In this document: piece by piece, positions 56,101 to 60,425 of the stretch
Layout of the letters: each line of letters opens with the position of its first letter
Numbering within the stretch: position 1 is the first letter of the stretch
NCBI GenBank assembly: GCA_047495785.1
Contig: JBLDXI010000033.1
Location: forward strand, 2,294,001 to 2,358,000
DNA: 64,000 nucleotides
Direction of reading: 5' to 3'
From: Lepidodermella squamata
Lineage: Eukaryota > Animalia > Gastrotricha
Notes under the pieces: generated by a model
The model's database searches: none
What the model was told of the DNA's origin: nothing
The model's input: the letters and a program-made list of their open reading frames with translations, nothing else
Made by a program: the position numbers and the translations under genes

Positions 56101-56600
56101 CTGAAGCAGCAAGGGCTTGATAAGGAAGCTGGAGAATATGTCCAATGCTCCATGAACGTGATCTTGAGAGACAGCGAAATAATATACGGTTTGTTCACCT
56201 TCAGTGAACGCATTCGAATGACCACTGTGAGATTTCAAGTAATCGTCAAAATGATTTTCCACCGGATATTTTTCGCTGCCCATAAACAGCATGTGCTACA
56301 ATAATCATCAATTAAGCTGGAATCTGCACAAGGTATGTAAAATTGACATACTTCCAAGAAGTGAGCGAGACCTTGAAGGTTTTCTGGGTCAGAAAACGAG
56401 CCAGCGTTTACGCATAAGGCAGCAGCCGCCAAGCGACCTTGGTGTTCTTCGTCTTCCTCTCCACTTAAGTCAACGTCCATTTCACTGGCTGTATCATCAA
56501 CGATTGAGTCGTGAATGAGCAATGCTTTGAGTCCATTTTCCAGCTCGACAAATCGGTATTGCTTCTTATCAGTGATGGGCTTTTCAATCTCTTTTGTCAT
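53196..56600 (-). CDS. NRDC: M16A metalloendopeptidase, nardilysin-like
   Basis: GLAHFLEHMLFMGSEKYP (HxxEH), acidic insert before AAAALCV, EPCFNILRTQKQLGY. Confidence 0.82.
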
Positions 56601-56866
56601 TTCAATAATCACACTAAGAATCAAATTACAACCGAGTCAAATATCCACTTTTATTTAAAAAGGCATAGGATAACACAAAAAATATCACGATAACATATCA
56701 ATATTAACATAAAAAATCAAGTTAAAAGTTCTATTCACCATGAACAGCTTTCCGATGTCGGGCAAATTTGTTACTCAAGCCAGCGATGTCATCTCTGCAA
56801 ATTGAAAATAAACAATTATGAACAAAAATTACGGTAATGTGCCTACGGTAATGTAGTTCTTAAATA

Positions 56867-57161
56867 TCGAGTTACTTTCCAAGCTGGCATAACGGTGATT
56901 TTGATGAGCGAAAATTTGAAGAGTTCACAAACATGATTTCAACTTTTAACGGATCCCTGGGATATTGGGTGACTATTATAACGGCTATAATACTGAGTTG
57001 CAATTTAAAAGAGACTTTAACGATTATATTAAATTTTAATATCTCCACTCAACCCTTATAACAAGCCCCACTAATAGCACCCACAATATTTCTATAATAT
57101 AGCCCTTAAAATTCTTATCAAATAAAATGTTCTAGCAAAGCCTGCTTGGAAAATAACTCGA
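56867..57161 (-). repeat. ~295-nt intronic foldback
   Basis: 22-bp terminal arms match 20/22, with nested inner stems (TGGGTGCTATTA/TAATAGTCACCCA). Confidence 0.6.
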
Positions 57162-57193
57162 CAACTTGTCATATTAAAGATGTAATCAACGTA

Positions 57194-57225
57194 ATCAGTT
57201 CGCTATGGGATATTAGATAAATCAT
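57194..57225 (-). ncRNA. Intronic mini C/D-like element, copy C
   Basis: ATGATTT-ATCTAAT-ATCCCATAGCGAA-CTGA. Confidence 0.5.
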
Positions 57226-57415
57226 TCCGTAAAAATGTATAAACGATGGCCGCAATGAACGAAAAATCCCACTAACCTTTTATTCTGAGCAAACATCACA
57301 TGCAGCACTGAACGACAAATCTGGAAAATAAGAGAAAAAATTAATAGATAAATAAATAAATACATGTATTGATTGAAACTAAAGCTAAATCATAAAAAAA
57401 TGTGCAATCAACTTT

Positions 57416-57447
57416 ATCAGTTCGCTATGGGATAATGAACAAATCAT
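57416..57447 (-). ncRNA. Intronic mini C/D-like element, copy B
   Basis: ATGATTT-GTTCATT-ATCCCATAGCGAA-CTGA, flanked by TTTA/TAAA. Confidence 0.5.
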
Positions 57448-57822
57448 GATAAAAAGGTAAAGTCGAAAAGTATTGTTTAGCTTTATACCTTTTATGAAAC
57501 GACATAACATTCGACTGCAAGCAAGCCAACATCGTATCAACTGCAAAAATAGAACCAGCTTTAATGAGCCTTAGTGAAAGGAATAGCTAAATTCGCGGAT
57601 CTAAATCAAATATTGATCCATGAGAGCTATACCGTACAAATTTATGCTTAAAATGGCTGAGGAAGGACCTCGTGCTTCATATTTCTTCGAAAATCGACTA
57701 AACCCGAAGGGAACAAAATAATCGTAGCAGTTCTGCGCTTACGTACATAGGAAATGCTCTCATGGTCAATGCTCAATTTATCTCATCAAAGCAGTCATAA
57801 TTAGAATGTCAATCAGAGAGAT

Positions 57823-57853
57823 ATCAGTTCGCTATGGGATTAAGGTAAATCAT
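57823..57853 (-). ncRNA. Intronic mini C/D-like element, copy A
   Basis: ATGATTT-ACCTTA-ATCCCATAGCGAA-CTGA. Confidence 0.5.
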
Positions 57854-58809
57854 AGCTTTGATAAACTGGTGAATAAAATTCAATGGCTGCCAACCTTTTA
57901 GCTAGACACAGCAGCGGACTGGAACGTGCTTTGAACTGTCGCATAAAAAACGAGTATAAAAAGATTCGACTTGATCTGAAGATAGAAAAGCCATACTGAA
58001 GAAAGTAAGTCCTTAGGAGAGCAAGCGACGCGACCAAGAACCAGGAACCACGTGCTGACAGCAACCCTAGTAATACCAAAATTTCGGACAAAAAACTGTC
58101 CGGAAACTGAGTGAAAACTAAGCGAATACTGGCCGTTTTTTAGTGGGAAACTAACAGAACACTATCAGATCATCTGTTAGTAAACAATCAGTAAACTGTC
58201 TGAAAAAACAACGAAATCTGTCCGAAAACTGACAGATTAAAAAAATTCGGGACAAAAAAAATAATTAATGCGCCACGCCAGCAGCTGTTGCAAACAATGC
58301 AAAAGCTGCGTGGAAGTGGCGCATGATGATTCAATTTATCGTTTCATTTTTTTATGGTAAAATCTAAAAAAAAAACCGCAAGAATTAGTATAATTGTACA
58401 TTCATATAAAAATAGTAAAAATGAAAGCAAAACAGATGAGAACGTCGGATGGCCATTCGAAAGGGACATTTCAACGAAAGACAGCTAGTTAACAAATGTC
58501 ATTTTTTACAAAATAGATGTTTTCTTTTTAAAATAATATTGATACATATAAATTGAGCGAGCAAAGGTATTTGTGAAGTTAATGCATCACTATTAATAAA
58601 AAATCCTAGCATTATTAGCCGAGTTTTCATCACGAGCATCACTTGAACATGATTTGGTAGATGAATGATATACAAGAAAGGCTTAGATGGCATGACTTTT
58701 CCGCTTATTATCACCGGTAAAAAAAGGTTATGAGAGAAGGCTAAAAGAAAAAGAAGAAGAACAAAGATGTACAAATGGCCACTAGTTAGTTCATGCTCAG
58801 GCTCGAGTT

Positions 58810-60425
58810 TCATTCACTTTCGAGCTGTTCGCCCTGCAGCTGTTCGCCCTGCGGCTGTTCGCCCTGCGGCTGCTCGCCCTGCGGTTGGCCCTGTGGCGCT
58901 GGATCTTGCTGCTGTTGCATCACATTCTTCAACTGATTTAAGGCGTTCACAGTATCGTCGTCAAGCGGCGGCATCAGCGGTAGCTTGGCAACAATTGCCG
59001 CCATCTCCGGATCGTCTAATGCGGGACGAAACTCCATAAAATCCGGGACATTATACTCAGTATAATAGGCGTGTTGATAAGGGAATGGCGCCGGGCCGTG
59101 GAGTCTGGCATCATCAGGATTTGAGCGGCGAATCTTTCGTCGAATATCGTCGCCGTGGTCCGCTAAGACTTTGCGCAGCCTTTTCCACAAATCAGTCATC
59201 TGACCAGAGGTCAGATGACGAAACAACAACATTAAGAAAACTGAAAAGACAGAGATATACTAACTACTGACTGAATGTTGTGCTAACTTACGTTTCACGC
59301 CGTTGACGAGAGTTTGATCGGCGACTATTTTTGAAGCCGCTCGCCACCTTTTTGGCTCAACTAGATAAAGCGCGAGATAATCATCCTGTTGAACAAAAGC
59401 ATTTCTGTTTTCAGTGATCATAAACAGGTAACAGATACACTAACAGGTAAGAATATATCTGCAACAAATTTTCCCACCTCAATGGGGTCATTTGATGTGC
59501 CAAATTTTGATTCTATACGAGCAGTCCAGTTTATGTTGTTTATGTACTTGAAAGAAAATCCAATTTTTAATCGATAATAGCATGAGATATATAAACATAC
59601 AACATGCGGCTTTTCTGCACAAATTACAAAAGGTTCCGATATCTCAGCTTCCTTGACGCCGTGCTTTTTCAAGTACATCAAAAACTGGAAAATTCACCAT
59701 GTAATGAGTAATAAGCTAACTAATTTCGGCCGAATTACTCACCTTTTTCTGATTGCCAAAACCCTGGTCAAGTTGGACTTTGATTTGCTACAGAAAAAAT
59801 ATAACGCATTTCCAATCTCATATTCCAAATCTAAATTCACCTTAAGTGTCACTTGACCAGACTCAGCACTAGACTGAGAAGAGGACGGGGCATCGGACTG
59901 AGAAGTGGACGGGGCATCGGACTGAGAAGTGGACGGGGCATCGAGCTGAGAAGTGGACTGGGCGCCGGACAGGGCACGAGACGTAGTGCCACGCTGAAAG
60001 CTTGCTTGAGAGCCGGATGGAGCGGCGGACTGAGCGGCGGACTGAGCGGCGGACTGAGCGGCGGACTGAGTAGTCTGTCGGACTGACTGTTGGCCGAAGC
60101 CCACAGCATTGCGCTGATTTGGTTTTTGCGAGTTTGGTTGGGACGTTGGTTGGGTTACGAAGCCAGAAGCGGCGGCCTGACTAACCGCTGCGGGCGGCTG
60201 TTCGGAATAACAGCTGTTTCCACCTCGGCCGGTCTGATTTGACGATCGCTGTGGGTTAGCACCCTGCATATTGAGATGGGCCGAAGGTTGCCCATACGCC
60301 GCCAAAATAGCTTGGGCATTGGCTCCTTGAGCTCTCGCTTTTGAGGTTAAAGCAACTATCAAATTCGGGCACGCGCTCCGAATAACCAGGTTGGGATTTT
60401 GTTGACGAACAGGATTATTACTCAT
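58810..60425 (-). CDS. Transposon accessory protein (low-complexity repeats plus helical C-terminal domain)
   Basis: About five exons; coding tandem repeats (SAAQ)n, (STSQSDAP)n and (QGEQP)n. Confidence 0.6.

Follow-up and report, generated by a model that had tools for sequence, protein, structure and literature searches.

Three putative intron-encoded box C/D snoRNA copies in the gastrotrich Lepidodermella squamata with a predicted target at C1379 of 28S rRNA

A stretch of 64,000 nucleotides of the genome of the gastrotrich Lepidodermella squamata (GenBank assembly GCA_047495785.1, contig JBLDXI010000033.1, positions 2,294,001 to 2,358,000; hereafter the window) carries on its minus strand three short, box-bearing elements, which are probably paralogues that arose by an old tandem duplication of a compact box C/D snoRNA, encoded in introns, that would methylate the animal's 28S rRNA at C1379. 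A first-pass annotation of the same DNA had already read them as C/D guide RNAs. Much of that reading stands, as the elements are box C/D-like, are found one per predicted intron on the strand of the neighboring genes and share a single conserved guide, but both the size and the target that it had given to them had to be revised. The copies are most likely an ordinary kind of guide gene with mildly unusual boxes, not a new mini-RNA of 31 nt. The coordinates of the features are given in Table 1.

The core of the elements, the 17-mer ATCCCATAGCGAACTGA, is found in the window three times with zero mismatches, each time on the minus strand (57840-57824, 57433-57417 and 57211-57195). Dinucleotide shuffles gave a chance expectation of 0.02 matches, and none of 100 shuffles reached three. 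With up to one mismatch, a search of the whole assembly (121.2 Mb in 151 contigs) returned the same three copies only, and the looser pattern CCCAYAGCGNNCTGA again returned just these three sites genome-wide. As the motif is confined to three places at a single locus, it is neither a dispersed repeat nor a common binding site, which the first-pass annotation had named as one outcome that would speak against its reading. Its description of the repeated motif also agrees with our results: ATGATTT recurs 6, 7 and 7 nt upstream of the core in the three minus-strand copies, and an invariant block of 18 nt, which consists of the 17-nt core and the T after CTGA, is embedded in diverged flanks that are ~25% identical. 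The spacing of ~40-50 nt from a splice donor was likewise accurate, with the C-like box lying 41, 41 and 51 nt past the G of AAAAG/GT.

A box-anchored comparison of the three copies extends the conserved unit well beyond this block. Each copy is composed of AUGAUUU, 6-7 nt, the 13-nt invariant guide, CUGA, 6-8 nt, UGAUU(G/A)N, 9-10 nt and AUGA, and the box-to-box lengths are 59, 58 and 57 nt for copies A, B and C, respectively. The window contains 647 CTGA sites, and the UGAUU...AUGA pattern comes after the CUGA of the three copies but after none of the others. Pairwise identity is 100% for the C box (7/7), the guide (13/13), the D' box (4/4) and the D-like box (4/4), 81% for the C'-like box, 46% for the second spacer, 32-39% for the first spacer and linker, and 24-27% for the 30-nt flanks. 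Identity of ~25% between the copies outside the boxes and guide is the level found for unrelated sequences. That the elements were kept at fixed spacing while their flanks diverged speaks for selection acting on every one of them and against a recent copying event, and the segment identities suggest that the copies are old duplicates in which five separate short elements were retained.

The D' box is an exact CUGA in all three copies, and the C' box, UGAUU(G/A), lies 6-8 nt downstream of it. The C box, AUGAUUU in all three, fits RUGAUGA at positions 1-5, the G-A core included, and has U,U instead of G,A at positions 6-7, while the terminal D-like box is invariably AUGA in place of the consensus CUGA. 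The best box is thus the internal D', and it is the terminal boxes that deviate, which is the reverse of the usual pattern. In the kink-turn, position 6 of the C box pairs with position 1 of the D box in stem II. U6 of the C box and A1 of the D box are therefore the expected partners, so that a U-A pair would replace the usual G-C, and the AUGAUUU and AUGA deviations possibly form a compensating pair. The bare AUGAUUU...CUGA...UGAUU pattern has eleven other genomic sites, which are probably chance occurrences. Nine of them were checked and none of the nine has complementarity to rRNA; because these nine look like chance, the scaffold appears not to be common to other snoRNAs. A search of the window for canonical C/D snoRNAs yielded just chance-level 9-mer matches, none with a consensus C box. 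No Rfam family matched the whole window at the gathering score, and a search of 56600-58400 with E values up to 10 returned nothing relevant and no match to SNORD48.

Table 1. Positions in the window of the three putative snoRNA copies, their helices and the predicted exons and introns around them.
Feature	Position	Strand	Size	Details
snoRNA copy A	57795..57853	minus	59 nt	C-like AUGAUUU 57853-57847; guide 57840-57828; D' CUGA 57827-57824; C'-like UGAUUGA 57815-57809; D-like AUGA 57798-57795
snoRNA copy B	57390..57447	minus	58 nt	C 57447-57441; guide 57433-57421; D' 57420-57417; C' 57410-57404; D-like AUGA 57393-57390
snoRNA copy C	57169..57225	minus	57 nt	C 57225-57219; guide 57211-57199; D' 57198-57195; C' 57188-57182; D-like AUGA 57172-57169
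Copy A with terminal helix	57782..57865	minus		5' arm 57865-57855; 3' arm 57792-57782
External helix of copy B	57380..57485	minus		5' arm 57485-57476; 3' arm 57389-57380; inverted-repeat search and fold
Long-range inverted repeat	56867..57161	minus	22 bp	57161-57140 with 56888-56867; 91% complementary
Predicted intron 1, with copy A	57541..57894	minus	354 nt	GT...AG; preceding exon ends AAAAG at 57895; from sequence
Predicted exon 2	57489..57540	minus	52 nt	Ends AAAAG before donor; from sequence
Predicted intron 2, with copy B	57321..57488	minus	168 nt	GT...AG; from sequence
Predicted exon 3	57277..57320	minus	44 nt	Ends AAAAG before donor; from sequence
Predicted intron 3, with copy C	56795..57276	minus		Donor 57276; from sequence
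Candidate further non-coding exon	56739..56794	minus		CAG/.../GTGAAT; between copy C and the M16 start; from sequence
First coding exon start, M16 (nardilysin-like) peptidase	56598..56613	minus		3' splice site ends 56614; ATG 56600-56598

Targets were scanned on the animal's own rDNA (18S, 28S and spacers) with the 13-nt guide. The scan, which had been proposed together with one of snRNA and tRNA in the first-pass annotation, returned no perfect match to the guide in the rDNA and a match of 11-13 bp in the correct register in 28S. At position 1379 the 28S reads GGCG[C]UGUGGGAU, in which the bracketed C is opposite the fifth guide position upstream of CUGA. In copy A, guide positions 3-13 pair with 28S in 11 contiguous bp, including one G.U two positions from the nucleotide predicted to be methylated; the pairing extends to 13 bp in copy B and 12 bp in copy C, and the two invariant A residues adjoining D' do not pair. 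Since 41 of 2000 shuffled guides (~2%) also gave at least 11 bp covering position 5, the 28S match alone is suggestive and not decisive. Weight is added by where the match falls, which is on the counterpart of a cytidine known to be methylated in humans. By a rough estimate, ~100 methylation sites in several thousand nt, taken jointly with the 2%, put the odds of the coincidence at roughly one in a few thousand.

In humans, SNORD48 has been reassigned to LSU-C1868 (Krogh et al., 2016, PMC5027482). The human Cm1868 is part of a GCmUG fragment at the base of helix 39, and SNORD48 forms nine consecutive bp from position 2 upstream of its D box (PMC5027482). The published RNU48 sequence ends ...CACCGCAGCGCT-CTGA-CC, from which the human target is GCG[C]UGCGG. 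The corresponding stretch of the gastrotrich 28S, whose conserved surroundings are the same, reads GCG[C]UGUGG, with the same cytidine and register and one base different from the human target. That base, at about position 1382 and three positions downstream of C1379, is the U of GCUG[U]GGG in the animal's own 28S and a C in the target defined by SNORD48, and the gastrotrich guide carries an A that matches the U. As judged from this complementarity, the guide most likely directs methylation of 28S C1379, the homologue of human 28S C1868.

Searches of 18S, the rDNA spacers, U6, U2 and tRNA-Pro gave no target as good as or better than that in 28S, and U6 and U2 had nothing of 8 bp or longer. The tRNA-Pro(UGG) anticodon arm, which had been put forward as a possible target, is not borne out, as the real gene (L018, 1474-1545) gives no contiguous 7-bp run with the guide. 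U1, U4 and U5 were covered through the genome-wide search for a perfect 12-mer complement. That search returned six other genomic sites, a number at or below the rough chance estimate, and none of the six is in an Rfam RNA. The second spacer, from C' to D, has no rRNA target common to the copies, which points to a single-guide snoRNA.

Against this background, it is unlikely that the copies are true C/D snoRNAs whose function lies wholly or partly elsewhere than in the 28S match, so that they would act as orphans on some other RNA with complementarity over the full 13 nt or, without methylating helix 39, as partners that fold it or compete for it. This reading would accommodate the invariance of all 13 guide positions and the flanking U, of which only 11 guide positions pair with 28S in copy A, as well as the G.U near the target nucleotide, the ~2% chance of such a match and the fact that human Cm1868 is modified only fractionally. 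It is opposed by the scarcity of other perfect 12-mer complements, by the lack of anything as good in U6, U2, tRNA-Pro, 18S and the rDNA spacers, and by a 28S match that falls in the exact register on a cytidine methylated in humans.

Several observations on the small-RNA genes were made in the course of these searches. The 22-nt anticodon arm of tRNA-Pro(UGG) has 510 genomic matches with up to two mismatches, and among the matches listed 100 of 100 are exact. Many are in regular tandem arrays with periods of ~3.4, 4.5 or 6 kb on contigs C1, C10, C20 and C24 (e.g., C24:4948544-5017308), and in one array unit (L018, 1474-2893) a stretch of 1.5 kb accommodates nine different tRNA genes, so that the tandem amplification seems to involve entire clusters of tRNA genes. 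Above the family cut-offs, at least 31 copies of U6 and at least 47 of U2 were found, many of them identical and distributed over many contigs, and some are clustered, such as those of U2 on C15 at 3.26-3.29 Mb.

Two of the three copies are bracketed by helices. In copy A, a helix of 11 bp, including two G.U, begins 1 nt before the C box and resumes 2 nt after the D-like box; an adjacent helix as long as this was found in 2 of 5000 shuffles of the flanks, and the fold of the 91-nt copy A region has a z of -2.94. The helix of copy B consists of 10 perfect bp; its 3' arm follows AUGA directly, and 28 nt separate the C box from the upstream 5' arm, which is located close to the donor. A search for a flanking helix of copy C found none. 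These helices bear on the size of the RNA. The ~31-nt element originally described is about half the length of the conserved unit of 57-59 nt, because a C'-like UGAUU and a terminal AUGA are present at fixed spacing in all three copies and the helices bracket the long unit. With 57-59 nt from box to box, the mature RNA would probably be ~65-75 nt long.

That the copies are instead natural single-domain mini C/D RNAs of ~31-35 nt, with the downstream UGAUU...AUGA outside the RNA, is in our view quite improbable. The best-conserved block is exactly this stretch. Single-domain C/D RNAs engineered to contain a 14-nt guide and just one box of each kind, C and D, have been shown to be both processed out of an intron and active, and very short natural ones have been suggested to exist (Deryusheva and Gall, 2019, PMC6770171). 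The minimal engineered RNA, however, needs a consensus terminal kink-turn with a stem (PMC6770171), which the 31-nt unit does not possess: its C box is non-consensus, and no helix adjacent to the 31-nt version (AUGAUUU...CUGA) exceeded chance in any of the three copies. In addition, UGAUU and AUGA were kept at fixed spacing in all three copies despite flanks at the level of unrelated sequences, and it is the long unit that is closed by the helices of copies A and B. The broader proposition, that the copies are either natural single-domain guides of ~31-35 nt or RNAs of 57-59 nt in which the G-C of kink-turn stem II has co-varied to U-A, is also doubtful. If either reading is true, the copies would be a natural counterpart of engineered minimal or altered guides (PMC6770171) and would reveal how much deviation from consensus can be tolerated by the C/D particle of eukaryotes.

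Other structures are present in the introns. The 22-bp long-range inverted repeat is just downstream of copy C, closes a loop of 251 nt and is single-copy in the genome. Introns 1 and 3 have long-range hairpins directly downstream of the snoRNA on the minus strand (57541-57794, z -2.8; 56795-57168, z -3.95), which may shorten the effective distance between snoRNA and branch site or may have been left behind by foldback insertions. The 3' arm of the copy A terminal helix can alternatively pair with a similar sequence near the acceptor of intron 1. A microRNA reading was rejected, as no hairpin carries the core in one arm, and the supplements of the paper on Lepidodermella small RNAs do not contain the core sequence; the public small-RNA data set of L. 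squamata is PRJNA511377.

The three copies are each located in a predicted intron. Polypyrimidine tracts are visible in the predicted introns, whose strand is that of both neighboring genes, and the three exons retain weak similarity to each other. The D-like box of copy B ends 69 nt before the predicted 3' splice site of intron 2, and for intron 3 the candidate acceptors are a CAG ending at 57142, a TAG ending at 57132 or a CAG ending at 56795. On the minus strand between 56700 and 58100, no open reading frame longer than 83 aa was found. A 3' splice site lies immediately before the ATG of the downstream M16 peptidase gene, so that the chain of exons with the snoRNAs may serve as the 5' leader of this gene; as far as can be read from the DNA, the host may thus be either a separate non-coding RNA or such a leader.

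The upstream neighbor is an open reading frame of 140 aa (58810-59232, minus strand) that has no Pfam match and ends with a PQGEQ-type repeat; no transcript or protein record was found that gives its exact product. Just upstream of the predicted first exon, the region 58050-58335 on the minus strand has a strong hairpin at ~58330-58270 and about six copies of a motif containing GACAG/CTGTC (e.g., CGGACAG and CTGTCAG), which may be promoter elements. Its sole Rfam match, at 24 bits (E 0.099) below the gathering score of 44, is a weak one to an H/ACA family (snoR2/U65), and neither an H box nor an ACA box is clearly recognizable in it.

The near-constant distance of 41, 41 and 51 nt from the donor, together with the lack of an Rfam match, could also be explained if there were no RNA gene and the 18-mer were a cis element in DNA or pre-mRNA, such as a splicing enhancer or a protein-binding site, that was copied with the exon-intron unit. 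We regard this as slightly less probable than the mini-RNA, as it leaves unexplained the four further box-like elements in C/D order and spacing, the flanking helices and the 11-13-bp antisense match that ends two nt from CUGA in the methylation register, and the motif is found nowhere else in the genome. The least probable reading is that the copies are decaying snoRNA pseudogenes with drifted boxes, a G.U in the guide and neither assembly nor function, to which the non-consensus C and D boxes and the missing terminal helix of copy C could be attributed, since identical deviant boxes and guide in three copies whose flanks are at the level of unrelated sequences imply purifying selection and no other guide of such form for the 28S site is present in the genome.

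For the favored reading, a compact box C/D snoRNA in three paralogues, we infer expression, processing, protein binding and methylation from the sequence anatomy, genome uniqueness, helices and complementarity described above. During or after splicing of the host, Snu13, Nop56/58 and fibrillarin would assemble on the C/D kink-turn, with the flanking helices of copies A and B aiding assembly, and exonucleases would remove the rest of the intron up to the particle. Pairing of the D' guide with 28S would then allow fibrillarin to 2'-O-methylate C1379, opposite the fifth guide position upstream of D'.

These results add a predicted guide and a predicted 2'-O-methylation at 28S C1379 for the phylum Gastrotricha; no snoRNA annotation was found in the Lepidodermella literature searched. 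They suggest that use of the helix-39 site, for which SNORD48 is the human guide, extends to a distant spiralian, in which the guide has followed a base change of the rRNA. The identical non-consensus C and D boxes of three anciently diverged copies also constitute a small natural test of which kink-turn positions are variable. The arrangement of one snoRNA per intron in a tandemly duplicated exon-intron unit is already well known.

Among known snoRNAs, the gastrotrich copies are most readily compared with human SNORD48 (U48/RNU48). Both are intronic single-guide box C/D snoRNAs, the gastrotrich ones by prediction, and by the box+5 rule both point to the homologous 28S cytidine at the base of helix 39, where the conserved context is GGCG[C]UG. 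The two guides differ at two positions, one of which follows the C-to-U change in the animal's own 28S, while the other creates the G.U. Unlike SNORD48, the gastrotrich copies have non-consensus boxes and carry the guide upstream of D' rather than upstream of the terminal D box, and no sequence or covariance-model similarity between them and SNORD48 is detectable. With the same target site but no detectable similarity, a different guide domain and odd boxes, they are better described as a functional analogue of SNORD48 than as a demonstrated orthologue. No orthologue was found in a metagenome contig of a related animal (L017, an ENA metagenome scaffold of 55.6 kb) or in one metagenome pattern scan. 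The former carries an M16 peptidase that is 59% identical and has no such guide, and the latter gave a single match in a bacterial coding sequence, which was discarded as chance. In L017, the neighbors of the M16 peptidase gene include an EF-hand gene, a NOL10-like gene and kinase genes.

Hosts with one snoRNA per intron include mammalian UHG and GAS5 and the Drosophila Uhg genes, and snoRNA-bearing 5' leaders are exemplified by RCC1/SNHG3. The gastrotrich locus resembles multi-snoRNA hosts in its short exons, with no open reading frame longer than 83 aa, each followed by a predicted intron with one C/D snoRNA, and in the tandem duplication of the exon-intron unit, here deduced from sequence. 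It differs from them in that all three introns hold the same guide.

The engineered single-domain C/D RNAs share with the gastrotrich copies one functional guide, a very compact form and processing from an intron, the last being predicted for the latter. In such engineered RNAs an internal kink-turn can substitute for an imperfect terminal one (PMC6770171), a result that bears on the odd boxes of the gastrotrich copies. The engineered RNAs are artificial and need a consensus terminal kink-turn with a stem, whereas the gastrotrich units, at 57-59 nt, have retained a second half with C' and D.
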